Positions 1,217-62,100 of a stretch of 64,000 nucleotides of DNA are shown here, piece after piece. The notes beneath the pieces were generated by a model. That model saw nothing but the letters and a program-made list of their open reading frames with translations. It did not search any database and was not told where the DNA came from. Source of the DNA: Schmidtea polychroa (Eukaryota); NCBI GenBank assembly GCA_044892525.1, contig CM097885.1, positions 49,724,001 through 49,788,000 of the forward strand, written 5' to 3'. The translations under genes were made by a program, and so were the position numbers. Within the stretch, counting starts at the first letter, position 1. Each line of letters begins with the position of its first letter.

Positions 1217-4200
1217 ATGTCTAATATTGGAAATAAAAATTCTGCCACCCATGGAGAACAAGAATCAACGTCTTCAGATCTTTCCGATGACCATCCATCA
1301 ACGACAACAGTTAGCACTGTGGCTGTACAGGCTGGTGATTCAAGAATAGTTTTAGCCATCTTAAAAGTTAGTTTAAAAATATTCGTGGAAACTATTATTA
1401 TAATTATTATTTAAAACCAAACTCAATAGAGTGGCAATTGGATAAAAGTAAAAATTCAAACAATGGATCCTGATCTTTATGATATTGGATTGACGACAGA
1501 GAAAGCTGAAAATCTTTTACAAACTCACAATACTTTATGTTCTAAAATAGCGGTAAAATTCTCATAAAAATTATTCAAGAAAATATTTTGTATATTTATC
1601 CCTTCAGACAAAACAGGGCCAAATTTCAGAGTTATTGTCGAGAGCCGATGACTTAGTTAGTCAGCAAACAACAGGTAGCCAATCAGATGTTTACGCGGCA
1701 ATGGCAGATTCTATGGGTCGAGCTTGGAAGGATTTGCAGAAAATATTGAATTATCGCACTCAGTTATTAGAATTAAACGTCAGATTTTGTTATTCGTTTG
1801 ATCAAGTCGATCAATTGTTAAATGAAGTAGAAAATCAGTGTTCCAAATCCAATGAATTTACCGATAAAAATGATGTCTCAGTGTTTATTCAAGTAGAAAA
1901 TTTGAATTGTTTTTTTTTCATTGATACTCGGCATAATTTTAGGAGCTAATGAAATTGAAAGATGAATTGCACAATGCCGATTCTCTATTCGACGAGAATG
2001 CCAATTGTTTTCTCGATTATTTACGAAACTTGAGTTTATTATCATCAACGGATAACTCTGGAGAAGTAACGAGAATTGTTGTCAAATCCGTAGAAGATTT
2101 AATTGGAAGCCTGATCAATCGACGATTACAAATAGAAAGTAAATGGGACAATAAAATTGATGTTTTACATTCAGAATCTTCAAACATGGATTCGGTAAGG
2201 AATTTAGAAAAGATTCTCGATTGGTTTGTGAATGTACGTTGTTTCGAGTTTAAATTAGAGTTATAATGTAATAAATATTAATAAAGGTTGGAGAGACAAG
2301 ATTAAACAACATGAAAATCGGACAAAATCTCAGAGATACAAAAGATTCCCTGGGAGATTTGATGGCTTTAATAGATGAAACAAGAATTGTACAAGACGGT
2401 CTAATTGTTATAAGTCGAACGTGCTCAACACAAAATAACTTCAACATTAATGAAAGATTGAAAATTGCTCAAAATCATTGCTCAAATTTTACTCAAAAAT
2501 TGGAAGATAAAAGGCGTTGTTTAAATCAAGCTGTGATATTTTTCAGTGAAGCAGACATTGTAAGTATTACATTCGTTGTTTATTTTTCCCTATTTGATTT
2601 ATTACGTAACAGAATTGCAGGTGAAATCATTTTCTTGCTGCTGGGATTCAATATAAATATTTATATTTTGTAATAATGATATGTAAAATTGGATGATAAC
2701 TTAAANNNNNNNNNNNNNNNNNNNNNNNNNNNNNNNNNNNNNNNNNNNNNNNNNNNNNNNNNNNNNNNNNNNNNNNNNNNNNNNNNNNNNNNNNNNNNNN
2801 NNNNNNNNNNNNNNNNNNNNNNNNNNNNNNNNNNNNNNNNNNNNNNNNNNNNNNNNNNNNNNNNNNNNNNNNNNNNNNNNNNNNNNNNNNNNNNNNNNNN
2901 NNNNNNNNNNNNNNNNNTTTAATTGAAAATAATTTCTGCATTTTAGCTGTATGACAAAACAAAAAATCTTGAACTTGAAATCATCAACAACCCAGAAAGA
3001 GAGACTTTACGAGCGGATTATTTCATGTCCCAATTGAGATCTATACAGTTACGAATGCCTGGGATTTGGAATCTCGCGAAATTGGTCGTGGAACGATTAG
3101 ATAGCTGCAGTAATGAGTTCAACAATCAAATCCTAATGGAGAAATCAATGATTAATGAAACAACAGAAAATTTAGAAAAGACCATAAATAATTTATCAAA
3201 ACTTTGTGAAAGATTTAAAAATGAAGAGAAAAATGAAGGACAACTTCATGTGATAGAAGAGAGAATTCGATCGGTTCTTATTGTTTTTGAATTATTTTTA
3301 ACGATAGTACCAATACAGTTGAAGACATGGCTACTGGAGGTTGCCTATCGAATGATGAGAGAATACATTGATTCACCAATATCAGTGCACTCGATCAATG
3401 ATCTGCTAGATCTGCACATCCGAGTTGAAACAGAATTAACATCAAAGTTTCAACAATTAACAAGTTTAAGAAATGATTTACAAACCACTTCAAGCCAGTC
3501 TTCAAATTATAGAGTTGTTGAAGTAATTACAAAATTAAACTTTCATTATAATTGTTAAACCATTATAACATTGCTTACAGCTAATACTGTATANNNNNNN
3601 NNNNNNNNNNNNNNNNNNNNNNNNNNNNNNNNNNNNNNNNNNNNNNNNNNNNNNNNNNNNNNNNNNNNNNNNNNNNNNNNNNNNNNNNNNNNNNNNNNNN
3701 NNNNNNNNNNNNNNNNNNNNNNNNNNNNNNNNNNNNNNNNNNNNNNNNNNNNTTTTATTTGTTCGATAATAATTTAATTACAATATTATAATTGATAAAA
3801 TCGGAACAATTTTCATGTCTAAAGAAACCATTTCAATTTGTTAATTAATAAAGAATAAAATAGTTGAAGTAAACTTGTCAGAACATCATATTAACGATGT
3901 CGAGAACAATATATAAAAGGTAAAGCAGGAAGCTTTCCTTAAACATATTAATAAGTCTGACAGTTAGACAATAAAGAGAAATAGAGCTTTATAATTATTT
4001 AAATTAGAACTAATTTGTGCTTGACAAAATGTAAAACAAAATTAAAAGTTTAATGAAAATATTTTTGCTTTTTTGGCTGGTTATTTTCCTGAGAAGACAA
4101 GGAAATATCCTGATGCGTACCGAGAACTAATTTAACCAATTGCGCTATATTGACGTGCCAGGCACGTCTTGGTGATTTTTTTCAGAACTGCAAGTGACGT

Positions 4201-12900: not shown

Positions 12901-15900
12901 ATTTTAGTATTTTTATCTCAATACAATATTTATAAATATATGTATATACTATTTCATTAAAAAATCTAGTTTAGAATAGTTATGATGTCTTCAACTTCTA
13001 AATTCATAAGATCAATAATAAATGCAGTTAAAATATATTTTTCAAAAAAACGCTAAAAACAATATTATTAAAACAAACAACTTTCCATAACTCTCCCCTT
13101 CTTTAAGGAACTGCCCATCTCTTAAGCCATTTAATTCGTCTGAGTTTCTTTGTCGTCCCGTCACTCAATTCCACCTGGTGCTCTGACAAAAACTTTGATA
13201 TTACAAAAGGACCTTCATACTGTAGTCCATCTTTGTCGCGATTTTGTGGTTCTTTCCGAACTAATACTTTCTCCCCCACCGTGAAACATCGATTCGTTCT
13301 CTTCTCTGTTTCCATCTCTTTCATTCGTTTAGCTGCTTTCTCACTGTTCTCTCTTACCAATCTATGTATCTCAACTGTATCCAATGTCGTCTGAGGCAAT
13401 GTTGAATGAAGGTTAATCTTCCTCCCAAAAACAATTTCAAATGGGGAAAATCCCGTCGCGCTCTGTTGTGTCACGTTGATACAAAATTCTACTCGAGGAA
13501 GTAACTCCGCCCAATTTCGCTCTCCTAGTCCACCTGCTAATGATGTTGCCAGCAAGTCTCTGACTGTCCGTATTGTTCTCTCAACTAAACCGTTAGATTG
13601 ATGCTGATATGGTGAACTGAACTGGTGCGTAATACCCAGTCTTCCTAGATTTGTTTTCATAAAACCACTATCGAAGTTCTTCCCTCTGTCTGACAGACAA
13701 TTTGGCGGTTTTCCGAAACGGTATATCCACTTCTCCAATATGGCTTTGAAAATCGATCTCTCGTCTTGTCTCTCCAGTGCGGTCAGACTGACCATTTTGC
13801 TAAAACGATCAATGATAACTAGCATATACTTGTACACTCCACCATTCTTCATATGTGCTACATCAATGACCAACTGCTCTAAAAAGTCTGAACTTATTAT
13901 CGGCAACAATCGTTCCTTTGTCTTCTCCTGCACTATTTTCCTTCTGCAGCATATCTCACATACTCTCAAACAGTTTTGTATAGTTTCTTGCATGTTTGGC
14001 CAAAAAAATATGTTGCTCATATAGCTAATTAATTTCTTTACTCCAATGTGACACATTTCAGTATGTATTCCTTTAACTAACGTATTTGAGTAGTCTATCG
14101 GCACCAGGATGACATCTTTACCATTCTTCTCTAATAATAAAAACCCATCTTCTAATTTTATGTTGTTATGCGAATTGAAAGGAAATTTCTTTTTATTCAA
14201 GTCATTTATTTCCTCTTCTCCCTGTAACACTCTTGTCATGTGAATGAAATCTACATCATCTTGTTGCTTTTCTAAGAGTTTTGTCATCGACTCAGTCTTC
14301 TGTAATGAGCTGATATGTCTTACTCTGGCTTTTTCTTCTTTTGCGTCTTCATGTCTAGTCTGGCATTGTGCACATAACATCCCTTTAATCCTTGATATTC
14401 CGTCCGCATTTCCATGTTCCTCTCCTTTCCTATATTGAAGATCGAAATCATATCCGGAAAGGTTGGCTAGCCAGGTTTGAAATTGCGGGCTTATCGGTTT
14501 TTTTGTGTATCTCATGAAAACCAACGCCTTGTGATCCGTTCGTACTACAAATGACTTTCCGTATAGATATTGTTTAAAATACATTACATATTCGTGTATA
14601 GCCAGTAACTCCTTCCTAGTCACACAATAACCTTTTTCATGCGCGGTCAAGTGCCTCGACCCATATGCAATTACCACTTCAGTACCATCTTCTTTAGCTT
14701 GACATAAAACTGCTCCGATGGCCCCAAAACTAGCGTCTGTATCCAGAATAAAGTTTCTATCCATTTTTGGGTAATCTAGAATTGGAGCTTCACACAACTT
14801 TGTTTTAAGTAATTCAAAACTATTGTTGCAATCTTCTGACCAATTAATCTTTTTCTCACAGCCGGACGTAGCTGCATGTAGAGGTTCCGCAATTTTCGCA
14901 TAGTCTTTTATAAACTTCCTATAGTAATTGGTCATACCTAAAAAGGATCTTAATTGTTTGGCGCATACTGGTATTTCTGCATCTTGAATCTCTTTAATCT
15001 TCTTGTCGTTCGTTTTTATCCCACTTGCACTTACAGTGTGCCCTAGGAATGTCAATTCTTCTTTATACAGATTACATTTTTCTGGGTTAATTCTCAACCC
15101 CGCTAGTTGAATTCTTCTGAATACTTCCTCTAATCGGTTATTGTGTTCCTCTTTGTCTTTTCCATAGACAAGAATGTCGTCGAGGTAGACAACAACACCC
15201 TTAAATAATATTCCATCCAACATTGAGTGCATGATTCTTTGAAACGTCGCAGGGGCGGTTGCTAGTCCAAAAGGAAGTCGGTTAAAACAAAACTGTCCTT
15301 GCCTTGTACTGAAAGCCGTGACCTCTTGAATTTCCTTCGCCATTCCAACTTGATAATATGCTTGACCTAGATCGATGGATGTGAAATATTTTGAATCTGC
15401 CAGACAATCCAGTAGAAATCGTGTATCTGGCATTGGAAAAGATATCTTTTCAGTGATCGCAATCAACCCTCTATAGTCGACACACATCCTTATTGATCCA
15501 TCTTTCTTAGCCCCAATCACTAGTGGCGCGTTCCATGCACTTTTGCATTTTCTAATAACTCTCGCTTCTAATAAGTCTGTGACAAGTTCGTCAAGCTTTT
15601 GTTCTAAATGCATTGGTTGTCTTCTTGGCTGTAACATTACAGGCCCACCTACTATATTCATTTCATGTTGAACAACTTTCGTAAACCCGAGATCAAACGT
15701 TGAAGCCATAAAAATACCTTTGAACTTTCGTAGCAATATGTCTAACTGTTCATTCTTCCTGTCTCCAAGCATTAATAATGCTTTCTCTTCTCGTTGTGAG
15801 TCCACATATGTCCTCCCTACTTGTGATGCTTCAATATTGTCTACCTCTACCAGTCGAATACCAAATCTCTCCATTGTATCTACACCCCCAATGAAATCTG

Positions 15901-18900
15901 GACGTATATCTTTGACAACTATAACATTAATAATTCTTTTTTTCCCATTCCAATCAGCTTCTATCGTCATTGCTCCTAACGGTCTTTCCATTCCCGTCGA
16001 AAATACTCCACAAAGAGAAATTGTGCTCTGCTTCAACCTCGGTTTCCCAATCTTTGTCCAACTTTTTTCACTCATAACTGATACTGACGCTCCAGAGTCC
16101 CAAAGCATGTCAATCGCCGTCATGTTTATTACAATCTTACTCCACTTTCTTCTGTCTGTCGTCTCATACATCTTCTGCATCATGTCTTCATTTCGCTTCT
16201 TTCTACTGATTATTGTGTCGACCCCACTGACAAAATGAAAGCAATGGGATCGTCCTTGTTTTTTGGTTTATCCATTGATTTTTTTATCGTTTCTTCGTAA
16301 TTACTGTATAAATCTTCTGTGAAATCACCATTATTTCTTTCGTGATCTTCTTCGTAAATACATGCCACTCTCTTCTGATATCCATTTCTATTTTTAAGCA
16401 AAAAACAATCTCTGAATCCATGACCTTCTTTTCCACAGATTAGACATTTGTGTTTCATAGGACATTCAAAACGCCGGTGCCCTTTTTCTCCACAACAAAA
16501 ACACTGACCTGGTGTCAGTTTCACTGGATGAGGCGAATCTCTTCCTTTGCTGTCATTAAATAACCTTCTCGCAATATCTTAAAGCGATACTGTAGGTATT
16601 CTTCTCTCTGGTTCTCCTGTTTCGTAGCGTCCTCTATACCGCTCATTTTCATTCTTGTCTTCATTTACAATTGGTACAAACCGACCATTACCAGGTCTAT
16701 TCCTCTCATGATTAATCTCTCGGTGTTCGTCGCGTTCATGTGCAGTTGTCTTCACAATTGTTCTTTGGTCTCGTCTACCCTCGAATTTACCATTTTTCAT
16801 CACTGATGCGTAAGAGTCTCTTCTTATGGCATCAATATTGAATTTATTGTCATTCGTCATCTCGATCTTCTCCCGAATTTTTGCCATATCCCTGGCATCT
16901 TCAAAACTTGTCACTTTCCCTGATAAGAATATTTCTTTTACTCTATCGTCTTTCGCTCTGTTTGAAATAATGTCTCGAACAATCTGTTCATCAGACATTC
17001 CAGAGCTAAATACACTTCTAACTAAACTTCTTACTCGTATTTCGAAGACTTGGAATCTTTCATCTCTTTCTTGCTGAATTTGAGCTAGTTCCACAATCTT
17101 GTTAGTAATGGTTTTCCTTACTGTAAAAGTTTCTATAAACCACTCTTTTGCCATTTCATCGGTCATCTTCGCTATTTTCGCCGCTTCCCATAACATCGAT
17201 GCCGCATCTGTCAACAAAAGATCCAATGCGTCTACTAGACTTTGATCTTCTATTCTCAGCCATTCCATAATATCCTTTAGCCAAAGTTCGGCTTCAGATC
17301 CAACTTTTCCGTCAAACTTTCTGACATTAAAATTTAGCATCTCACGTGCTTGTTTTGACAAGGAATCTAACATATTCTTGGTTCCTTTCTTTTTTCCTAT
17401 CGCATTGATTTCCTTGGCGTGGTCGCCAGTTATGATGTCTTCAACTTCTAAATTCATAAGATCAATAATAAATGCAGTTAAAATATATTTTTCAAAAAAA
17501 CGCTAAAAACAATATTATTAAAACAAACAACTTTCCATAACTAGAATAAATTCTACTAATTATATGTTAATATCATTACGAAAAAATCATAATTAAAAAG
17601 CAACGAATAAGTATTGTAATTGTTTATATATTTTTTATTATTCAATATTTTAATTTGTAAAAAATTTACTTTAAAACTTTAAATAACAGTTTTTCTGTTA
17701 TTTTATTTGTAGATTAAAATAAATATAAAATATCCCCGATGGCGGATTCTATGTGGAAATATTTTACAAAAGAAAAAGGAGGTGAAAGAGTTAAATGTTT
17801 GAAATGTTCAAATAAATGGTTAAGTTGCAAAGTATCCTCAGCTAGTGGTTTAATAAGACATTTGCAACATGTTCATAAAATTAATCTGTTGAAACGAGAT
17901 TCAGTTGACGATCAAGATGTTGGTTCAACGTAGGAAAACTTTCAATAATATCTAAGAACCAACCTCACAGAATATCATTCTTTACTAGAAAGCAATCAAT
18001 GGCAGAAATTGTGGCACAACTTGCGGCTGTTGATGTATTTTCAATCCATGGAATTTGCAAAAACGAATTTATTCGCCAATCGGCAATATATTTAACCAAA
18101 GGTAAAACTAAAGTAATGAAATTAATTCATGACTTTTATAAGTCTGCAAAAAGTGAGGTTGTAGCAAAAATTCAATCGCATAAAGATCTTTGTGGTAAAT
18201 TCAGTCTTACATTAGAATCTAATGATTAGATGAATGGACTAGTTTACGAAACCGGCGCTACTTCAATATAAATGTTCATTTTGATACTAAATATATAAAC
18301 TTAGGATTAGTGGCAATTAAAAACAGACGAATTGGTGAATTCAAAGCTACTAGGTTTTGGTATCAATTTATCTGATGTAGTCGCGTCGACCACAGATGGT
18401 GCTGCTGTCATGGTAAGATTTGGAATATTATCCGAATATATTCACCAGTTATGTTATAATCATGGCATACATTTAGCTGTTATTGATGTAATTTATAAAA
18501 AAGTGGAAAATGATATTGTAAATGATGATTATCAAAGTGATACCAGTGAAAACGAATATAGCTCCATTTCCGATGAACTTTCTGCCTCTGATGGTGATGT
18601 TAAACCAAATGATACTAGAACCCAAAATCGTGAATGTGATGATATTAGTAAGGCATTGCAAATGGTAAGAAATATTGTAAAATCTTTTAAAAGATCACCA
18701 AAACGAAATTCCATACTTCAAGAACATGTCAAAGAAAAGCATGGGATACAACCGAGTTTGCTTTTAAATTGTAAGACAAGATGGAACAACATTGTCACCA
18801 TGATAGAAAGATTTTTAAAAATTATTGACTCAGTTCGGAAGGCATTGAATGTATTAGGTTCACCTTCTCTACTGAATGAAAATAGCATTTCAATATTGTC

Positions 18901-21900: not shown

Positions 21901-24900
21901 ATTACTGATTTGATTTGTTTTCATTTAGAATTACATTTATCTTCATTTNNNNNNNNNNNNNNNNNNNNNNNNNNNNNNNNNNNNNNNNNNNNNNNNNNNN
22001 NNNNNNNNNNNNNNNNNNNNNNNNNNNNNNNNNNNNNNNNNNNNNNNNNNNNNNNNNNNNNNNNNNNNNNNNNNNNNNNNNNNNNNNNNNNNNNNNNNNN
22101 NNNNNNNNGCTGCCAATAATGTATTTAATGATATTTAATAATATATCAAATGTAAAAAGAGCATTAATTTGGCAAAAACATATAAACACAAGCCATAATA
22201 AAAGTCCACATGTGCTGACTCTTACTAAAGTATAGGGATAGGTATTATCTTCCAAAAATGGATTCTATGTGTTTATGCAGATCTAAATTACTGTCTTATG
22301 GGTGTAAACTTAACAATCACCATAATTTATATATTTATATTGAAATTTAAATTAAATACTTTAAGGGATAATGCCGTTGAACCTACAACACAAAATCTAT
22401 CTTTGTCCTGTGAAATCCACGGAGTTCCAAAACCAAAGGTAATATGGTTATTTAATGACAAAAAAATCGACGAAGATGACAATGGATATTCTTTGATTGT
22501 AAAAGACGAACAATACACTTTAATCATTCATAATGTAAACGAAAATACGGCAGGTAATAAGTTATGTCTATGATAAAATTAATCCTTGTCTTTTCACACA
22601 ATAGGTCATTATTCGGTAGTTGCTGAAAATACTTACGGTACCGTTCGAAATGAAGCTATTGTTAGAATTGATGATAAGTATTTCTATTCTCATAATTCTC
22701 AGCGAGAAAATGTTCAATGGAATACAGAAAAACACTTTTACTATCGAGATGAAAATATAAAAAGACAGAAATTAATGTCGACAAATACCGCTAGTGTGTG
22801 TCAACATTTAGAAATAAACCAATCACCTTTGAAACGGGCCGGAAGTGCTATTATTTACTCAAGCACTTTACAAAGAGAAATAAAAAATCCGATTGGTCAA
22901 CAACCAATAGAATTTGTTTTCGGTTTACCGAATGCCACGAGAGTGGTGGATTCTAAAGTAAGTTTTATTAAAATTTGTAGATATGCTATTGAGATTTCTG
23001 TAACTTTTTTCTTTTCTTGTATTTTCATTTCTAAACATACGAATGGCCTTGCTTTTGCCTTGATAAATTTCCAACCGTTTTTCCCTCGAAATTAGCTACT
23101 AACGTTAGGGAAAGAAGACTCAGTTGAACAGTGGAATGAAAGAAATGCATGGCATTCATAGAAAACGAAATGCAAAATTACCCAAGCATGAAAACATAAA
23201 ATGTTAAATAAATAACTCACTTCATATATCTGTAGATTCTCGGAAGCAATATGTATAAGAGTGAAAAACAGTTCAATAAATCCATGGAAATTGTGCCATT
23301 TACAAAAACATCTAAGTTCAAAGCTTTACTGGAGTATGATTTAAAACCTGAGGTAATATGCGGTACCGAATCCAATGTTGATATATTTAAAACCATGGAC
23401 ATATTGCTTGTTGGAAAGACAAGTCGTTTCCTTTCTCATATAAATGCTGATTTGAGTAAACAACTTGATGTGATTTCCGGTTGTCAAAGTATAACAGAAA
23501 TTGAAAAATCTTTCGAATTTACACCAATGGTGAAGCAAAGTAAATTTTTGTCACAAATGTCTACTGATTTGAATAATCATCCAAGTGTAACGGTTGGTTT
23601 TGAAAGTGAAAAAGAAATAGCAAAAGAACTTGAAATTACACCATTAGTCAAACAAAGTCAGTTTTTGTCCCAAATGAGCACCAACTTGTATCATCATCCG
23701 GATGTCACAACTGGTTTTGAGAGCGAAAAGGAAATAAATAAAAGCTTGGAAATAACTCCAATGGTAAAGCAGAGCCAATTTTTGTCTCAAATGAATACAG
23801 AACTTTATCATCATCCGGATGTCACCACAGGTTTCGAAAGTGAAAAAGATATAAATAGAAGTTTAGAGATAACTCCAATGATAAAACAAAGTCAATTCCT
23901 ATCTCAAGCAAGTACTAATTTATATTATCATCCGGACGTCACCATAGGTTTTGAAAGTGAAAAAGATATAAATAGAAGTTTAGACATAACTCCAATGGTA
24001 AAACAAAGTCAATTCCTATCTCAAGCGAGTACAGATTTATGCCATCATCCAAATGTTTTATCAGGGTATGACAGTGATAAAGAGGTTATGAATCCTTTGC
24101 AAATTACTCCGATGGTGAAGCAGAGTCAGTTCCTCTCTCAAGCGAGTACCGATCTTTATCATCATCCAGATGTAACATCGGGTTTTGACAGTGAAAGAAA
24201 AATACAGAAAAATCTTGAAATCACTCCAATGGTAAAACAGAGTCAATATTTGTCTCAGGCGAGTACAGACTTATATCATCACCCAGATGTTTTATCAGGA
24301 TACGACAGTGATAAGGAAATCTTGAATCCTTTACAAATTACTCCAATGGTTAAACAGAGTCAATTTTTGTCTCAAGCAAGTAAAGATTTATTCCATCATC
24401 CAAATGTTTTATCAGGATACGACAGCGATAAAGAGGTTATGAATCCTTTGCAAATAACGCCGATGGTCAAGCAGAGTCAGTTTCTCTCTCAAGCGAGTAC
24501 CGATCTTTATCATCATCCAGATGTAACATCGGGTTTTGACAGTGAAAGAAAAATACAGAAAAATCTTGAAATCACTCCAATGGTAAAACAGAGTCAATTC
24601 CTATCTCAAGCGAGTACAGATTTATGCCATCATCCAAATGTTTTATCAGGGTATGACAGTGATAAAGAGGTTATGAATCCTTTGCAAATTACTCCGATGG
24701 TGAAGCAGAGTCAGTTCCTCTCTCAAGCGAGTACCGATCTTTATCATCATCCAGATGTAACATCGGGTTTTGACAGTGAAAGAAAAATACAGAAAAATCT
24801 TGAAATCACTCCAATGGTAAAACAGAGTCAATATTTGTCTCAGGCGAGTACAGACTTATATCATCATCCAGATGTTTTATCAGGATACGACAGTGATAAG

Positions 24901-27900
24901 GAAATCTTAAATCCTTTACAAATTACTCCAATGGTTAAACAGAGTCAATTTTTGTCTCAAGCAAGTACAGATTTATTCCATCATCCAAATGTTTTATCAG
25001 GATACGACAGCGATAAAGAGGTTATGAATCCTTTGCAAATAACGCCGATGGTCAAGCAGAGTCAGTTTCTCTCTCAAGCGAGTACCGATCTTTATCATCA
25101 TCCAGATGTAACATCGGGTTTTGACAGTGAAAGAAAAATACAGAAAAATCTTGAAATCACTCCAATGGTAAAACAGAGTCAATATTTGTCTCAGGCGAGT
25201 ACAGACTTATATCATCATCCAGATGTTTTATCAGGATACGACAGCGATAAAGAGGTTATGAATCCTTTACAAATAACGCCGATGGTCAAGCAGAGCCAGT
25301 TCCTCTCTCAAGCGAGTACCGAACTATATCATCACCCAGACATTGTATCAGGATATGACAGTGATAAGGAAATCTTGAATCCTTTACAAATTACTCCAAT
25401 GGTTAAACAGAGTCAATTTTTGTCTCAAGCAAGTACAGATTTATTCCATCATCCAAATGTTTTATCAGGATACGACAGCGATAAAGAGGTTATGAATCCT
25501 TTGCAAATAACGCCGATGGTCAAGCAGAGTCAGTTTCTCTCTCAAGCGAGTACCGATCTTTACCATCATCCAGACATTGTATCAGGATACGACAGTGATA
25601 AGGAAATCTTGAATCCTTTACAAATTACTCCAATGGTTAAACAGAGTCAATTTTTGTCTCAAGCAAGTACAGATTTATTCCATCATCCAAATGTTTTATC
25701 AGGATACGACAGCGATAAAGAGGTTATGAATCCTTTGCAAATAACGCCGATGGTCAAGCAGAGTCAGTTTCTCTCTCAAGCGAGTACCGATCTTTATCAT
25801 CATCCAGATGTAACATCGGGTTTTGACAGTGAAAGAAAAATACAGAAAAATCTTGAAATCACTCCAATGGTAAAACAGAGTCAATTCCTATCTCAAGCGA
25901 GTACAGATTTATGCCATCATCCAAATGTTTTATCAGGGTATGACAGTGATAAAGAGGTTATGAATCCTTTGCAAATTACTCCGATGGTGAAGCAGAGTCA
26001 GTTCCTCTCTCAAGCGAGTACCGATCTTTATCATCATCCAGATGTAACATCGGGTTTTGACAGTGAAAGAAAAATACAGAAAAATCTTGAAATCACTCCA
26101 ATGGTAAAACAGAGTCAATATTTGTCTCAGGCGAGTACAGACTTATATCATCATCCAGATGTTTTATCAGGATACGACAGCGATAAAGAGGTTATGAATC
26201 CTTTACAAATAACGCCGATGGTCAAGCAGAGCCAGTTCCTCTCTCAAGCGAGTACCGAACTATATCATCACCCAGACATTGTATCAGGATACGACAGTGA
26301 CAAGGAAATCTTAAATCCTTTACAAATTACTCCAATAATGAAACAGAGTCAGTTTCTGTCACAAATGAGCACAGATTTATACCATCATCCAGATGTATCA
26401 ACGGCTTTTGACAGTGAAAGAAAAGTACAGAAATGTCTTGAAATTACTCCAATGGTAAAACAAAGTCAATTCCTATCTCAAGCGAGTACTGATTTATATC
26501 ATCACCCCGACCTTCTCACTGGATATGACAGTGATAAAGAAATCTCGAAACCATTGCAAATCACTCCAATGGTGAAACAGAGTCAATATCTTTCGCAAAT
26601 CAGCACTGATCTCTATCATCATCCTGATGTCAAAACTGGTTTTGAAACTCAAATAGAAATACAAAATGGTTTAGAGATAACGCCAGTCGTCAAACAAAGC
26701 CAGTTTATATCTGAAACAAGTACAGACTTACGTCACCATCCAGATATTCTATCAGGTTACGAAAGCAATAAAGAAATGCAGAATGCATTGCATGTAACAC
26801 CATTTGTCAAACATAGCCAATTTCTGACCCAAATGAACGCTGATATATCTAATCATCCAATTGTAATAAGCGGATTTGATGCTGAAAAAGAAATATTGAA
26901 AACATTTGACGTTACACCGACCATTAAAGATAAACACTTTCTTTCTCAAATAACGGCTGATATTTCCAAGCGTTCTGACGTAAGTTGCGGATACAATACA
27001 AACAAAGAAATATTTACTTCCCTTGAGATCGTTCCAGTCGTTAAAGAAAGCCAGTTTTTAACGCAAATTTCTACTGAAATTTGTGAAAATATTGGAGTAA
27101 GTTCAGGCTTTGGCAGTGAAAAAGAATTAATAAAATCCATGGATATTACTCCAATGATAAAGCGGAATCAGTTTATGACGGAAATCGACGCAAATATTAC
27201 CGGATACTGTTCACCCAATGTTCCACATCCGACCAACACAATTATTGAAAATGTTATGGGAACTACACCAGGTATGTCAAAGATTTATAGAGAAAAGAGA
27301 AGTTTTCCCGAGACTTTCGAAAGTTTCAACAGTGAAATGAAATTCGAAAACGATTTGCATTTAATTCCATCAGTGAAACAAGAACAATTTATAACCATTG
27401 CTGATACTGAGGTCTCTGAAAGGGTTTCTTTTACTCCAGGGTTTGAATCTGTTTTAGATAAAAGCTTTGATCTTAACATTATTCCAATAGTTAAGGGGAA
27501 AAATTCGACTAGACATTTTTCCATTACAGACGACACAAAATTTGACGCTTATTTATCCAATAATAATTTTGCGTTTCAAATGAATGTTTTACCATTGAAA
27601 TATAAATCTAATAAATTAAATAAATCCGACGAAGGGAGTCTATCCATGTCCATTTATTCCCTAACTAAAACTGAATCGAAAGAACTATTTGATGACTCGA
27701 ATTTCCTTAAGAAATCTTATTCTTCCGACACTTCTTTACGTTCAATTTTAGATCGAGCAAATAATAAAAAATTTGATGATACATTTTATCTTTCCCAGAC
27801 TCTCAGAAATCAAGAACCAAAATACCCATCTAATACTGATATGGGAGATTCAATTCAAAATATTTCAGTTCAAAAAAGAAAAGAAATATTCGAAAAAACT

Positions 27901-53100: not shown

Positions 53101-56100
53101 TAGAAAGTAAAATGGAAAATGTTATCGAAACTGAGTTAATTGAAGAATATCCACAAGCTCTAGAATCATCAATTGCAGAAGATGTTGTTGAGGAAGAGAT
53201 CGATACTGTCGAGGCGTCTATTGTAAAATCCGAGGATAAGTTATCGGCTCTATCAGAAGCTGTCGAACAAATAGAAAAGGTTGAACAAGACGAAATCAAA
53301 GACGAGGATTTAGAAATTAAACAAGTAGAATCTATAACAGCTGCCATTGAAAGTATTTCTGAAGAGAACGTAATTGAAATTAAATCAGAAATGCCTGAAA
53401 TAAATGTTTTCGAAGAAATGAGAGTAGAAGAGGAAATTATGAAAGTCGAAGAGGTTGTTGAAGAAACTATTGAAAAAGAAGAATCGGTTGAAGACTCATT
53501 CGAAATAGAAATGGAGCTATCAGACATTGAAAATGAAAATGTAGAAGTAGATTTTGAGATTAAAGATAAAGAAGAACTTCGAGTTGTTTCTGAAAATGTC
53601 GAAATTGTCAATGAAGATGAAACTGAAGCATGCAAAGAACAATCATACGAGGCGCCCTTAGAAAGTAAAATGGAAAATGTTATCGAAACTGAGTTAATTG
53701 AAGAATGTCCACAAGCTCTAGAATCATCAATTGCAGAAGATGTTGTTGAGGAACAGATCGATACTGTCGAGGCGTCTATTGTAAAATCCGAGGATAAGTT
53801 ATCGGCTCTATCAGAAGCTGTCGAACAAATAGAAAAGGTTGAACAAGACGAAATCAAAGACGAGGATTTAGAAATTAAACAAGTAGAATCTACAACAGCT
53901 GCCATTGAAAGTATTTCTGAAGAGAACGTAATTGAAATTAAATCAGAAATGCCTGAAATAAATGTTTTCGAAGAAATGAGAGTAGAAGAGGAAATTATGA
54001 AAGTCGAAGAGGTTGTTGAAGAAACTATTGAAAAAGAAGAATCGGTTGAAGACTCATTCGAGATAGAAATGGAATTATCAGACATCGAAAATGAAAATGT
54101 AGAAGCAGATTTTGAGATTAAAGATAAAGAAGAACTTCGAGTTGTTTCTGAAAATGTGGAAATTGTCAATGAAGATGAAACTGAAGCATGTGAAGTAGGA
54201 TCATACGAAGCGCCTTTAGAAAGTAAAATGGAAAATGAGAGTACTGAGACAATATTTATAAAACCTGATAACATGAAAAATATTTTATCTGAATCAATTG
54301 AACAAATTCAGAAGGTAGAACAATGCGAAAATAAAGACGAAATTGCTGAGGCAATGCAAGATACAGCTTCTGAGGCTGTTGTGGAAAATGTACTCGAACA
54401 AAAGATCACTGGACAAAAGACCGACAAACTCGAAAGAAGTATTTTAGAAATTTCAAATGTGCAATTGGAAATTATGAAAGATGAATCATTTATGGAAGAC
54501 TTAATTGAAAATGAAGAATCTTTAGAAGTTTCATTCGAAGTGGAAAACGAATACGCCAAGTCGATATACAATATGGATCTTCAGAATGTTTGTGACGATA
54601 TTGAAGATTTAGAGGTGCATGAAACGTATATATACGAAGAAAGGTTGGATGAAGTACATTTGGAAAATGTAACTGAAATAAATCTTTTGAAAAATGAAGT
54701 AATTAAAGAACAGCCACAATTTTTAGAGAGGCTGACAACTGACACTATCGTTGATGAAGAAATGAAGACTGTTGAAGGTGTTATTGTAGAATCAAAAGAA
54801 GAGATGAAAGTTTTATCTGAAGCTGTCGAACAAATCGTAGCAATTGAACAGAGCGAAATTAAAGAAGAATTATCAGAATTAGCTTTAACAAATATTGTTG
54901 AGGATAAAGTTTTAGAAACTAAATCGGAAAGGTCTGATGAATACGTTTTAGTGGAAACCCAAATGGAAATCGAAACTCCGAAAGCTGAAGCCGATACTGA
55001 AGAAACAATCAAGAAAGAAGAGACTATAGAGGACTCGTTTGAAATAGAAATGGAGTTATTAGATGTCGAAAGTGCGAATGTACAATCGGAATTCATGTCA
55101 AAGAACAATAAAGAGCTTCAAATTGTTCCCGAAAATATTGAAACTGTTGATGAACATGAAGCCGAAACATGCAAAGAAGCATTATATGAGGTAATTTTAG
55201 AAGGTAAGACAGAAGAGAATGTCTTTAAAACTAAAGTGATTGAAGAACATCCATATTTCCTAGAAGAATTGATAACAGAAAATATTACCGAGGACGATAT
55301 AAAGACTATTGATGCAACAGTTGTGACATCAGATGCGAAGGTTTCAGTTTTATCTGAAGCAGTAGAACAAACGCAAAGGGTTAAGCAAGATGAAATTAAA
55401 GATGATGTTGCAGAAATAGAACAAGTCATAGCTTCTAATTCTGTTGTTGAAAGCAAGGTTATGGAGCATGAATCAGAGAGACCTGAGTTGAATGTGTTGG
55501 AAGAATCGAAAATTGAAACAGAAATAATTGAAAAAGAAGAATCTATAGAGGACTCATTTGAAATTGAAATCGAATTATCAGATGTTGAATACCAAGATGT
55601 AGAAGCAGATTTCAAGACAAAAGAAAATTTAGCACTTCAAAATGTTTCTGAAAATGTGGAGAATATTTGTGATTATGTAGCTGATTTAAGTGAAGTATGT
55701 CTAGAAAATAAAGTTGAAGACAATGTATTTGGTACTATAGCAATCCTAGGACATCCACAAACTCTAGAAACGATAGTTGCTGATATTGTTATCGAAGAAG
55801 AAATAAATACTATTGAAGCAACAATTGTGAAAACCGAAGATAAGTTATCGACTCTATCTGAAGCTGTTGAACAAAATGTAATGATGGAACAAAGTGGAGT
55901 CAAGGAGGATGTTTCAGAAATTAAAGAAACAAGAGCTTCTACAGCAATTGTTGAAAATGTACTTGAAAATAAATCAGAAATGTTAGATGTCAATGTTTTA
56001 AAGAATTCAGAAGTTGAAGAAATTATGAAAGATGAAGCAGTTTTTGAAGACATAATTGTAAAGGAGGAATCAATGGAAGACACATTTGAAATAGAAATGG

Positions 56101-59100
56101 AATTGTCAGATGTTGAAAATAAAGACGTGGAAGCGGATTTCAGGACGAAAGATAATAAAGGACTTCAAAATGTTTCTGAAAATGTAGAAATTAGCGACAG
56201 GCAAGAAGCCAACATACATGATGAAGAAATCGAGGAAGTAAGTCTTCAACATAAAATAGAAGAAGATGTGTTTAAAACTGAAGTAATTAATGAACAGTTA
56301 CAATTTCTAGAAGAGCAAATAATTGAAAATATTGTCGACGAAGAAATGCATAATGTTGAAGCAACGCTTGTAAAGTTAGAAGAGCAACAAACAGTTCTAT
56401 CTGAAGCAGTAGAACAAATTAAGGAGCTAGAACATGACAAAAACGAAGTTTCAGAAATCAAACAAGATTTAGTTTCTTCAGCTGTCGTGGAAGATGTTCT
56501 TGAAACCAATATTAATGAAAGTGAAGTAAAGGAACTTCATATAAGAGTTGTAGACTCAATAGAAAGAGAAGAATCAGTTGAGGATTCTTTTGAAATAGAG
56601 ATGGAATTGTCAGATGTTGAAAATGAAGACGTAGAAGCAGATTTCAAAACAAAAGACAATAAAGAACTTCAAACTCTTTCTGAACATATTGAAGTTCAGG
56701 ATGAAAATGAAACTGAAACAATCAAAGAATTTGATAAAGTTAATTTAGAAGGTAAAGTCGAAGAAAATGTGTTCAAAAAGAATATAATTGAAGAACATCC
56801 ACAATTTTTAGAAGCATTGATAGCTGATAATATTGAAGATGGAATGGTAAATAATGTTGAAACAACCATTGTAAAACCTAGAGAACAGTTAGCAGTTTTA
56901 TCTGAAGTAGTTGAACATACACAAATCCTTGATGAGAACGAAATTAAAGAGGAGATTGCTGAAATAAAACCAACAACAGCTTTCGCAGATCTTGTTAAAA
57001 ATATACCTGAAGATAAGGTCTGTCAGCATAAATCGGAAAAGCTCGACGTAAATGTTTTGGAGGAAGTGAAAATGGAAAAGGAAAGTTTGGAAACTGAGGA
57101 CGTGATCAAAGAAACAATTGAGAAAGAAGAATCGATAGAAGGCTCCTTTGAAATAGAAATGGAATTATCGGATGTCGAAGGTGAAAATGTTGAAGCAGAT
57201 TTTAAGACAAAGGAAAATCAAGAACTTCAAGTTCTTTCGGAAAATGTTGAAATTCAAGACGAACATGAAGTGGAAAAATCCAAAGAAGAATCGGATGAAG
57301 TGAATTTAGAAAGCAAAGCTGAGGAAAATGTGTTCAATATAAAGGCAATTGAAGAACATCCAAACATTTTAGAAGCGTCGATAAATGAAAATATTGCCGA
57401 AGAAGAAGTAAATACTGTTGAAGCAACTCTAGTTAAATCGGAAGAACAATTACCGGTTTTATCTGAAGTTATTGAACAAGTTGAAAAACTAGAAAAAGGT
57501 GAAATACAAAATATGCATTTGGAAACTGAAGAAGATCAAGTTGTTCCTACAACGGTTGGTTCTATGAAGGAGACTAAAGCTGAAGCATTCAAAACAGACA
57601 TTGAGAATGAATTACTGGAAGAATCGTTTGAAATTAATCTAGAATTAGAGAATGCAGAACATAGCGATGTTAAAAATGAGTTCCAAGTTAAAAATCAATA
57701 TTCTCTCCAAGAAATCTCTGAAGTTATTCCAACAATCGATGATAAAGAACTTGAAGAAATTGCTGAGATCTTGTCCTACGTAAAAGCTGAAGATAAAATT
57801 GTAGAAGATGTCTACGATCGTAATATCATTGCAGGCATTTCTGAACAGCAGATATTATTCGAAGAAAGTTTTGTGAAAGACATTGCAGAAGATGTAGCTA
57901 AATTTGTTTCGGCGATGAATGTTGTTGGAGAGGAAGTTAATAAGATTATGTCGGTCATAGTAGAACAGCGTGAAATTCTTGATTTCATTAAACTCAACGA
58001 TTTAAATATCGAAATTTCAGATGAAACAGCAAAAGAGTTCATCGTTAAAAATCAGGCAGATAATAAGGCGGTCATTATACCAGTAGAGCAATTAGAAAAC
58101 ACCACTGAAGATATCGTCCACGATCTAAAGGATCTTATTGCCGGTGAGAATTTCGAGAGAACTCTGATTAGCGACGCATTTGAGGACAAAATCTCTAAAT
58201 CCCAGCCTGAGATATTGGTGGAGAATTCTGGTGAAGATTTCGAATTTGAAATTCCTGATAGTAAAACTGACGAAGTAGATGCTGATTTCAGTTTGAAGAA
58301 ACCAACTGAAAGCATTGTGAAAATTTCAGAGAAAATTTCTAGAGAAAATACAACTGAATCCGTTGACAGCCAAAGCAAACTTGAAGAAGTTGAAGAAATG
58401 GATGACGATGATGGACTGGGAGATTCTTATTTAGATGATCGTCATGATTTGCAATCGGCAAAGAAATTCCTGCTCCAAGAAAGTCCACATGTTGTTGAAG
58501 AAGACATTTTAACCGGAAGTTTTGATTCCTTTACTGAAAGTTTGGAATATGAAGATTTTGATGATAGTAATTTTATGGAATTGAAAGAATTAAAAACATC
58601 TGAATACGGGTTTGATACTGCTCTATTCAGTAAACAACAGAGTCATGTTGATATTATTAATGAAAGGATTGTTGAAGAAATCATATCCGATACCAATGAA
58701 TTATATGACAGTGATATCGCTGAAATCGTCGAACTCGAACTAGACTCCGATGTTTTACAGTTAGCTAAGACTAGCCAAGAAGTTTTCTTCGTTAAAGAAT
58801 TGACAGATATGACATTGTCGGTAGGGAAATCTCTTCTTCTTGAATGTGAAATTACACCAACCGTTGATGTTGTCGTGGAATGGTTTAAGGTCAATATCAA
58901 TGTTTGCTATTTTAATAATAATATTATCATTATAGAATTTAACTCCCGTGATATCCAATGAGCATATTGCAATCACCTATGATCTCGGAAAATGTATTTT
59001 GATGATTGCTGAAGTTGAGGAAGAAGATTCCGGGCAATATATTTGTAAAGCTTGTTCTCGTGAGCGTAGTATTTCTACATCCAGCAATGTTACTGTGAAA

Positions 59101-62100
59101 AGTAGGGAGATTATTTTCTTTTCGAAATTTCATTATTTTGCTTTAAGACGGTACTTTAGAAGCGAAAGAGAGTGATGAAGAAACCATTGATGCTTCATTT
59201 GAAATTGATGCTGACAATAAGCAAAATACTGACGATGTAAATTCCGAATTTGCCCTTCATCCAATCGTCAAAGAGCCTTTGCCGAATGAAATATCCATTC
59301 CAGAACGTGGCAAATTACTTCTTCAGTGTGCGATCGTACAAAGCCCTGAAAACAATGTCAGCTGGTATTTAGATGGAGATTTATTAGAAAATTCGGAAAT
59401 TTATGAAATTAATAATACACCTGATGGAGTATGCCAATTAATCATCCATGAAATTTTCCCGGAGGACGAAGGATATTATTGCTGTAAAATCGAAAATCAG
59501 TTTTCAACCATCGAAACTGGCACAGATGTTCGAATTATACCGGATAGTGTTGCTGGTCAAAAACCGAAAATTGAGTCTAAATTACTTGAAAAAGCCGTTG
59601 AAGAAAATTCAAGTACTAATGACTTTTTGTTGGACCTAGAAGATGAACAACCGATTACAACAGATGCTGTCGAAGCAGTCTATGAAGGGAAATATGAAAA
59701 TCTTCCAGAAACTGAATCTATGGATGTAGATTTCAACTTGGAGCTTGATGATAGAAGTAAGAATTTTTTGTCTATTTTGGATAATTTTACCTTTCAGAAT
59801 TTTCTGTTAGAAATTTCAAATATATTTAGCATTTTAAGTGAAATAATTACTTATCTAATGCATAAGATACCAAGTAATAAAGCTGCGATGGATGGTGAAG
59901 CATTAGAAATTTAATATAATATTTTACTTATAATTTGTCAGTTAGAAATAAATAATTAAATAAATTAAATTATCAAATTATCAAATGATCAATAAACTTA
60001 TAATAATTGANNNNNNNNNNNNNNNNNNNNNNNNNNNNNNNNNNNNNNNNNNNNNNNNNNNNNNNNNNNNNNNNNNNNNNNNNNNNNNNNNNNNNNNNNN
60101 NNNNNNNNNNNNNNNNNNNNNNNNNNNNNNNNNNNNNNNNNNNNNNNNNNNNNNNNNNNNNNNNNNNNNNNNNNNNNNNNNNNNNNNNNNNNNNNNNNNN
60201 NNNNNNNNNNNNNNNNNNNNNNNNNNNNNNNNNNNNNNNNNNNNNNNNNNNNNNNNNNNNNNNNNNNNNNNNNNNATTACGTAACGTCGAGTATCGATGC
60301 CGAAAAGACTATACAAATACCTTCAACGCCAATAGATGTATCAGCAGTTCTGGAAAAGAATCAAAAAGCCAACGGAACGTGTGATACAGTGGTAATATCA
60401 TGGGAAATGCCATCAGAAAATCAAGGATCAGTTACCGATGCCATATTACAATACAGATCAAATAAAGATTCAGAATGGCAAACTGTTGATTCAGAAATGA
60501 ATGTAAACAAAAAGACTTGTACCTTACCCGTGGAATTATTATCAGAAAATTTGTCTTATGAATTTCGTTTAATCGCGGCAAATGCATTCGGTCGAAGTAA
60601 ACCATCAAAACCTTCTAATGCTTTATCATTAGGTTTAATCTTTTTAACTCTATTTGTAACTAAATTCTCATTAATATTTTCAGAAATACCACCAAAAATT
60701 ATAAAGCCATTGGAAAATATTGTGGTTAAAAATATGAATGAAAAGATTGTTTTGACCTGTGAATTGTCTAAGCCCATTGAAAAATACACCTGGCTAAAAG
60801 ACGGGTTACCTTTGATTCCTAACAAGAATCTTGAATTCACGGTTAATGATAACAAATACAGTTTGACAATCAAAAATGTTACTAAAGAAGATATTGGTTT
60901 GTATAAATTTAGTTTGGGAAAATTAATAACCGAAGGTCGTGTTGATATGCAAGGTAAAAGTTGATAATATAGTTTCTTTTATGTTCATTTTGTAATTAGT
61001 TCCTCCTCATCTTCTTGAAAATAAGAACTTCAAAGAAAGATTGATAATGAAAGTTAACAGCTCGTCTGTCATTGAGATTCCATTCATGGCATTTCCTAAG
61101 CCAAAAATATCTTGGACTTTCAAATCATTGATCAAAAAAAATGTTACAACGCCCAGATTTCGTTCAGAGGATGCTTTAGGGGGTTTAGCATGCTTGACTT
61201 TATCCAAAGTGAAGCCTGATGATGAAGGAATTTATAATGTGAACATATCTAATGAACATGGAAAGTTAGATTTATCTGTTGAAGTGGTTATTTTGGATAA
61301 GCCCAGTGAACCAGTTGATTTAAAAGTGATGGATAATCAAGGAGATAAAGTTTCAATTGCTTGGAAACCACCAGTAAGTGAGCTCAACAGACCCGAATAT
61401 CAAGTCAAAGAAACGGGACCAGTTACATACATAATAAAAATGAGAGAAATTGCAAAAAGAAAAGACATTGATTTAGGAGTTTCAATGGTGCCAACATATG
61501 AAATATCTAATCTTATTGTAAATACAAAGTATGTATTTTGTGTGGCGGCAAAAAATAATTTTGGTGAATCAAATTACGTGGAAACTGGAACTGTTGAAAC
61601 AAAATATCCGTTTTGTGTTCCAGATGCTCCAACAGAATTAAATCCACAACCAAGAAATCTGGGAGAGGTCTCACTTTCTTGGATTCCTCCATTAAAGGAT
61701 GGAGGCTCTGAGATTTTAAAATATGTAGTGGAAAAGAAATCAGAAACATCTGGTTCAAAATGGACTCTCATTCCTATTGAAATGACTGATAACAAACCAA
61801 CTTCTAACTCTTGTATTGTGAAATCTTTGAAGCCAACAATCAAAGTTCAATTTCGTGTTGCTGCGATTAATAAAGCTGGCCAGAGCCCATTTAGTTTACC
61901 GACAGAATATCTTTTACCAATATCAAAAGACAAGTTAATTCCTGGTGTACCAGAAATACAATCAATCATTCCAATTGGTCTAACAAGTGCAAATCTTTCG
62001 TGGACCGCCCCTGAAAAATCTGATTTTCATGGACCGGTAGAATATTATGAAATTGAAATGAAGGAGTTTTCTCAAACCGATTGGAAACCGTGCTTACAAA

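Follow-up and report, generated by a model that had tools for sequence, protein, structure and literature searches.

Titin-type proteins set the passive tension and the layout of muscle, and their spring regions vary by lineage. In vertebrate titin, the PEVK region consists of PPAK repeats of ~28 residues and poly-E segments, and lineage-specific repeats, proposed to be elastic regions, are found in invertebrate proteins of this type (PEVT, CEEEI, AAPLE, and BLUE in Caenorhabditis elegans TTN-1, PEVK-like sequence in Drosophila Sallimus, and the repeats of crayfish I-connectin). Differential splicing of spring regions occurs in other titins, and beyond vertebrates, flies, and nematodes, few such regions have, to our knowledge, been investigated. 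Here we describe a tandem array of a 39-residue repeat encoded by one giant exon of a titin-like gene of the planarian Schmidtea polychroa. The DNA analyzed, referred to below as the window, is a stretch of 64,000 nucleotides (nt) read on the forward strand (assembly GCA_044892525.1, contig CM097885.1, positions 49,724,001 to 49,788,000) and numbered from its first letter.

The array is expressed, is contained in one of two splice forms, is under purifying selection, is restricted to flatworms, and has no predicted fold. We propose, with a probability of roughly 55%, that it is an adjustable extensible segment of a flatworm titin-like protein, specific to flatworms and included or skipped by splicing; its elasticity, binding, and regulation are what we infer. 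Like the vertebrate PEVK region, the array consists of short tandem repeats between immunoglobulin (Ig) segments of a giant titin-type gene, is alternatively spliced, and has no predicted stable fold. It shares no sequence similarity with that region, however, and differs from it in having a 39-residue unit, a Pro content of ~6%, and a far higher conservation of sequence. Similarly, it resembles the repeats of TTN-1, Sallimus, and I-connectin in being a lineage-restricted array in a titin-like protein, but there is no detectable homology to them, and the genuine relatives found by profile search come only from flatworms. The kind of element is known, namely, a differentially spliced, lineage-specific repeat of the titin type; this family is uncatalogued and, as far as our searches reach, undescribed, and its sequence is unusually conserved.

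Tandem Repeats Finder detected a 117-nt period with 26.9 copies at 23519 to 26660 and higher-order periods of 234, 351, and 468 nt over the array (scores of up to 3044), and the + strand reading frame is stop-free from 23236 to 28998, with a listed open frame at 23251 to 29001. We delimited the units by cutting the translation at the hxPhVK anchor (h, hydrophobic residue), which gave 32 strict 39-residue units at 23518 to 27261, with 2 degenerate units (starting at 23290 and 23401) ahead of them. A hidden Markov model (HMM) of the unit extended this picture downstream, so that the unit-bearing features of the exon are as follows.

23290 to 27261, + strand: array of 34 consecutive units (2 degenerate plus 32 strict units of 39 residues, or 117 nt), delimited by Tandem Repeats Finder, anchor cutting, and the unit HMM.
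27361 to 27477, + strand: isolated degenerate unit after a 33-residue nonrepeat insert (unit HMM, E 2e-4; aligned with the other units).
28372 to 28839, + strand: four degenerate units (starting at 28372, 28489, 28606, and 28723) present in both splice forms, found with the HMMs; tblastn matches to the fluke arrays also fall here.

A first-pass annotation made from the letters of the window had described ~33 tandem copies of a 39-residue unit at 23287 to 27200. The copy number agrees with our count and the array does lie there, but an end at 27200 falls within the last strict unit, and the degenerate tail lies beyond it. Each core unit matched the unit HMM with an E value of 1e-16 to 1e-25, and there was no further match anywhere in the six frames of the window; in the whole 781-Mb assembly, all 39 matches of the unit search lay inside this single exon. 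An HMM built for the whole family found 41 unit-like stretches in the giant exon and 1 in the next exon; past the array, the giant exon thus has about 7 degenerate units. Across the 32 strict units, Pro3 and Lys6 are invariant, and Phe/Tyr10, Leu11, Leu18, His21-Pro22, Gly27, Tyr/Phe28, and Ser30 are the other fixed positions. The array contains 19% Ser plus Thr, 4.5% His, 6.1% Pro (two or three prolines per unit), 12.5% Asp plus Glu, and 7.6% Lys plus Arg; the fixed hydrophobic positions and the Ser/Thr richness noted at first pass are thus both seen in the units.

At 95% DNA identity the units fall into 19 subtypes, which follow one another in the order ABCD-EFGHF-EFGHF-IJHKHF-EFIJ-LMNOPQRS, and some multi-unit blocks of the core are 100% identical in DNA. 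The repeated blocks in this order imply recent duplications of multi-unit blocks within the core. The copy number given here is that of the assembly, since near-identical core units collapse in short-read contigs. Contigs of runs X6 and X7, which behave as DNA because the intron at 23100 to 23235 is present in them, matched pieces of the array without any difference. No X6 or X7 contig covers 26682 to 28870, and the contig letters before 26488 and before 28883 disagree with the window, which could reflect a haplotype or strain difference in the 3' part of the array or just the record filter. The window also carries nine runs of N (159 to 277 bases, at 2706, 3594, 12151, 21949, 34579, 35471, 47236, 60011, and 62231), several of which overlap + strand open frames.

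The exon structure around the array was read from the contigs of run X1 (organism A), which behaves as RNA, as its contigs lack introns. The features involved are listed below, with a slash at each splice border.

22605 to 22957, + strand: upstream exon, encoding the last part of an Ig domain together with ~100 residues of unique linker; donor GT at 22958 (AAA/gtaagt). Its last 22 bases (22929 to 22950) precede 23236 and 27799 in contigs of X1 and X3.
23236 to 28884, + strand: giant coding exon of 1,883 codons, phase 0, containing the array, a unique stretch, and the degenerate tail (acceptor tctgtag/ATT, donor CCAAAA/gtaaat, X1 contig ends).
27785 to 27799, + strand: internal alternative 3' splice site, ttatctttcccag/ACTCTC (junction contigs of X1, organism A, and X3, organism B; frame checked).
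30150 to 30359, + strand: next exon, 70 codons, with a final unit-like stretch (…ISGFDS…PLD VVPVVPEQ…) like that closing the fluke arrays (X1 contig; family HMM, E 2e-7); its 3' border is a prediction.

In one X1 contig, 29 letters of another exon stand directly ahead of 23236; 22 of them are exact at 22929 to 22950, and the other seven equal 22951 to 22957 with one changed letter. At the other end, an X1 contig joins 28884 directly to 30150. These junctions agree with the tctgtag acceptor and the gtaaat donor, and we therefore place the giant exon at 23236 to 28884. The same upstream-exon letters also occur directly ahead of 27792/27799, both in X1 and, with species-specific substitutions, in run X3 from a related species (organism B). 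Position 27799 is preceded by tttcccag and lies 4,563 nt, or exactly 1,521 codons, past 23236, in frame. Thus, two species make two splice forms, one that includes the array and one that skips the whole array in frame. The short form retains the last 362 codons of the exon, including the four degenerate units. Word depth in the X1 contigs rose from ~11 on the side of the array to ~51 past 27799; this difference suggests a lower abundance of the long form, although contig depth gives only a rough guide. Expression of the exon, on which the first-pass proposal of a functional module depended, is accordingly borne out by spliced X1 contigs. Two further features of these contigs are recorded here. 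Some of X1 diverge from the window at 26574 and 28208, with onward letters that are absent from the window and no GT donor at 28209. Contigs of X3 end in A-runs at 28498 and 28884, six of them at the last base of the exon; these could stem from internal priming or from an alternative polyadenylated short transcript.

The units proved far more alike as peptides than as DNA. Between adjacent units, ~76% of synonymous sites differ (pS, 0.76) and ~19% of nonsynonymous sites (pN, 0.19), and conserved residues generally use many codons, with Leu11 encoded by six different codons across the units. In the X3 contig of the related species covering 23236 to 23462, all 15 of the differences from the window are synonymous. 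Since synonymous sites between subtypes are saturated while amino acid change is low, we concluded that purifying selection acts on the array peptide and not on the DNA. These results bear on the idea that the array has no function of its own, having arisen by recent neutral expansion or through an assembly artifact. That idea draws on the multi-unit blocks of identical DNA in the core, on a copy number beyond confirmation by short-read contigs, and on the odd ends of the X6 and X7 contigs at 26488 and 28883. It is contradicted by a frame that stays open for 1,883 codons, by the saturation just described with little amino acid change, by the exclusively synonymous divergence between two species, by the expression and splicing of the array, and by the conservation of a homologous array in flukes and a tapeworm (see below). 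We regard it as largely refuted already and as highly improbable.

To place the exon in its gene, we compared the window with giant proteins of flukes. By tblastn, proteins P0021, P0023, and P0016 were colinear with the window from 1265 (residue 8) to 61625 (residue ~5,620), which indicates that the window covers about the first two thirds of a titin-like giant gene. At 1265 to 1940 on the + strand, the window is 46 to 51% identical to residues 8 to 196 of the fluke proteins, which places the N terminus of the gene inside the window. The array region of the flukes (query residues ~2040 to 2480) falls on 23629 to 28806, and the Ig domain at 30421 to 30898 matches the Ig domain that comes next after the array in flukes. 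In the orthologues, spectrin-like repeats are followed by Ig domains, the array, many further Ig domains (dozens in all), and then fibronectin type III (Fn3) domains; the latter lie in the C-terminal part of orthologue P0016 that aligns to 60308 to 61625. Pfam I-set Ig domains were detected (E 6.5e-57) as seven stretches in the frame at 44470 to 46911, with matches also at 49086 to 52085. Judged by this alignment, the host gene is the flatworm orthologue of a giant titin-like muscle protein with the order spectrin-like repeats, Ig, array, Ig, acidic giant exon, and Fn3/Ig. The titin-like nature of the protein, already proposed at first pass, is upheld by the I-set Ig exons that flank the array and by colinearity with flatworm proteins named Titin. 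A spectrin-like start is unusual for a titin-like protein and accounts for the public label “Nesprin-1” borne by some of the orthologues.

Two other parts of the gene deserve mention. A 3,291-codon open frame comes after an Ig domain on the + strand at 49086 to 58961. Its product is extremely acidic (Asp plus Glu, 29.8%; isoelectric point, 4.05) and is built from repeats of ~230 residues, beyond the 500-nt limit of the tandem-repeat tool; the gene thus probably has another spring exon, of a poly-E-like type. On the − strand, an intron of the titin-like gene holds an intact Ty3/gypsy-type pol frame of 1,026 codons (13103 to 16183, within ~12978 to 17542), in which protease, reverse transcriptase, RNase H, and integrase can be recognized by eye.

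Searching 1.84 billion representative proteins with a profile of 25 units gave 13 hits, among which a Heterobilharzia protein (P0001) and an Opisthorchis protein (P0002) were genuine. None of the other hits (P0003 to P0013) is treated as a relative here, and the six that were read (P0003 to P0008) are unrelated repeat proteins, each with many matches that cover no more than a fragment of the unit. No score exceeded 63.5 bits, and we take this to mean that the planarian array itself is absent from that protein collection. A second search, with the Opisthorchis array as the query, returned eleven giant proteins, whose sources are flukes and a single tapeworm; they are variously labeled Titin, Nesprin-1, or unc-89 or not labeled at all. 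Proteins with such arrays include the Titin of Fasciola hepatica (P0021), the Nesprin-1 of Schistosoma mansoni (A0A5K4FFR8; P0023), OON14167 of Opisthorchis viverrini (P0002), the unc-89 of Clonorchis (P0018), two proteins of Calicophoron daubneyi (P0017 and P0019), and the Titin of the tapeworm Hydatigera taeniaeformis (P0026). The arrays of these worms, which carry no annotation and of which our literature searches found no description, have 10 to 13 units of 37 or 39 residues in most proteins examined. The HMM search of proteins that the first-pass annotation had called for therefore yielded relatives only in flatworm titin-like proteins among the hits read. Its description of the repeat as unrecognized holds in that no catalogued family contains it, but the repeat is not confined to this genome, being conserved in flukes and a tapeworm.

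We aligned 27 planarian with 43 fluke and tapeworm units over 39 columns. Pro3 and Pro22 are invariant in flukes and nearly so in the planarian, and a fluke 39-residue unit (…TDIYSKPEVTSGY…) aligns column for column over the planarian one (…TDLYHHPDVTSGF…). Conservation across flatworms extends to hydrophobic residues at positions 1, 4-5, 14, 18, 24, and 38, Pro3, an aromatic at 10, Ser/Thr12, a basic residue at 21, Pro22, Gly27, Tyr/Phe28, Ser/Thr30, Asp/Glu31, Glu33, and an acidic residue at 39. We define the flatworm unit by its length of 37 or 39 residues, the hxPhV opening, Pro22, Gly27, aromatic residue 28, Ser/Thr30, and acidic residue 31, and the planarian units show all of these features. 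The arrays are homologous, lie in colinear genes, and are flanked by Ig blocks at the same location, ~2,000 residues into the protein. Their units agree in length, in the opening hxPhV, in the aromatic residue at 10 and the hydrophobic ones at 14 and 18, in basic-Pro at 21-22, in G-[YF]-x-[ST]-[DE], and in the h-[ED] end. They differ in that flukes have mostly 37-residue units with Pro at position 6 and Glu/His-rich tails, whereas the planarian has ~34 units of strictly 39 residues with Lys6, a Gln/Ser-rich first half, and His-His-Pro. The His-His-Pro motif singled out at first pass is indeed present in the planarian units, but His-His at 20-21, like Lys6, is specific to the planarian lineage, since the relatives keep only a basic residue and then Pro there. 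By sequence comparison, then, the planarian array appears as a lineage-expanded version of a 37/39-residue repeat common to flatworm titin-like proteins.

Within flukes, individual units are orthologous, and the array is 52% identical between Fasciola and Schistosoma, compared with 34 to 60% for the Ig parts. Residues ~2400 to 3400 of Calicophoron P0017 contain about nine near-identical copies of a 111-residue, three-unit super-repeat, while P0019, a paralogous or alternative Calicophoron model, has ~13 distinct units. The Calicophoron array expanded independently, so that copy number has changed independently in two lineages.

Known families gave no home to the repeat. Pfam listed only Talin_VBS2 (PF25177) for the whole exon, with no passing stretch: the whole-exon score of 52.7 bits (E 7e-14) is a sum over >30 copies. 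Each core unit has a stretch of ~17 residues (…VKQSQFLSQASTDL…) similar to profile positions 29 to 45, but the profile describes a helical domain of 116 positions, and the units match within positions 25 to 45 only. A four-unit piece reached 22.6 bits over 17 profile positions, against a cutoff of 24.2 bits, and neither the divergent units nor the fluke arrays gave a match. Since the score fails on pieces and on the homologous fluke arrays, we rejected it as a summation artifact; apart from it, Pfam offered no existing family that would undo the first-pass claim of novelty. A PDB sequence search with six units found nothing below E 0.06, the best score of an ESM Atlas feature search (0.77) was under the level reached by shuffled sequences, and literature searches covering planarian titin, TTN-1 PEVT, schistosome titin repeats, and motif strings found no description of this repeat. 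There was no Pfam match to PPAK or Nebulin (PF00880) up to E 10, in agreement with the first-pass view that the unit is neither PEVK-like nor nebulin-like.

A periodic, nebulin-like filament-binding scaffold is the main alternative reading of the array. The units would then fold on sites of the thin or thick filament and would glue or measure rather than stretch. Nebulin repeats resemble the flatworm units in length (~35 versus 37/39 residues), in forming super-repeats, and in having a conserved aromatic-acidic motif. A scaffold would also make sense of the strict unit length (39 in the planarian, 37/39 in flukes), of a conservation equal to that of Ig domains with units orthologous across flukes, of the multi-unit super-repeats, of a composition on the folded side of the charge-hydropathy plot, and of the conservation of hydrophobic residues at 10, 14, and 18 and at 24 and 28, a pattern that suits an amphipathic helix stripe or a strand. 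Positions 10, 14, and 18 are compatible with a helix stripe or, together with Ser/Thr12 and Thr16, with one face of a strand. The Nebulin repeat, however, is helical with an SDxxYK motif, and the unit described here has no match to its profile, no predicted helix, and several prolines. The two or three prolines per unit sit poorly with such a scaffold, as does the AlphaFold2 result, which gives neither helix nor strand: with four units and a 35-row alignment, the mean predicted local distance difference test score (pLDDT) was 36.9, and with three units and a 66-row alignment it was 43.9, without secondary structure in either case and with a predicted template modeling score of 0.11. This modeling, proposed at first pass for three to six units, therefore produced three- and four-unit models without confident structure, and the isolated chain is predicted to have no stable fold. 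It also speaks against a scaffold that splicing can remove the array whole and that copy number ranges from ~10 to ~34 between lineages. We hold this reading to be possible but unlikely.

The conserved residues raise the further idea that the array is a regulated switch, in which His (responding to pH or metal) or phosphorylation of acid-flanked Ser/Thr and of Thr-Pro would alter stiffness or binding; a metal- or pH-sensitive module was one of the functions suggested at first pass. His is enriched (4.5% in the planarian, 3 to 6% in fluke arrays), a basic residue or His ahead of Pro22 is conserved, and so is G-[YF]-x-[ST]-[DE]-x-E across flatworms, a motif compatible with acid-directed kinase sites. 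The His-His pair is lineage specific, however, with most fluke His at positions 34 and 36, and Thr2 alternates with Val in flukes; going by these sequence patterns, we judge a switch as the main role of the array improbable.

Our preferred reading, an adjustable extensible segment, corresponds to the elastic option among the elastic, actin-binding, and metal/pH-sensitive functions suggested at first pass. It is favored by the combination of predicted disorder and block-wise alternative splicing, and the variable copy number fits a length-tunable element. The internal acceptor would let the cell include or omit all 1,521 codons in frame, and at 0.38 nm per residue, the chain separating two Ig blocks would gain as much as ~580 nm in contour length when the array is included. 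Through the conserved positions (hxPhV, aromatic 10, basic-Pro 21-22, and G-[YF]-x-[ST]-[DE] at 27-31), the segment is probably tuned by contacts or by acid-directed phosphorylation. Several points weigh against this reading. The evidence for isoforms comes from contig assemblies rather than raw reads. Because the alignments were shallow and built from repeats, the low pLDDT supports disorder only weakly. With 36% hydrophobic residues and a net charge of −0.05 per residue, the planarian unit lies nominally on the folded side of the charge-hydropathy plot (grand average of hydropathy of the array, −0.51; aromatics, 7.4%), unlike the fluke arrays, which fall on the disordered side of the line. 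Finally, conservation at the level of Ig domains and unit-by-unit orthology among flukes would be unusual for a purely entropic spring and seem to point to specific contacts. One more speculative proposal takes up such contacts: the unit would be a new, flatworm-only fold-on-binding module that docks periodically on the thin filaments or the paramyosin-rich thick filaments of nonstriated muscle and is switched by acid-directed phosphorylation or His protonation, with splicing of the 34-unit block setting reach and adhesion by muscle type. We consider this combination rather doubtful.

The public names Titin, Nesprin-1, and unc-89 for these proteins rest on generic domains only. The repeat is found in planarians and in medically important flukes in arrays of ~10 to ~34 units and is, in the planarian, under a clean all-or-none splice choice. 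The array is thus a simple handle on how extensibility is tuned in soft-bodied, nonstriated muscle, and since no relatives were detected outside flatworms, the repeat may serve as a parasite-specific muscle marker or antigen.

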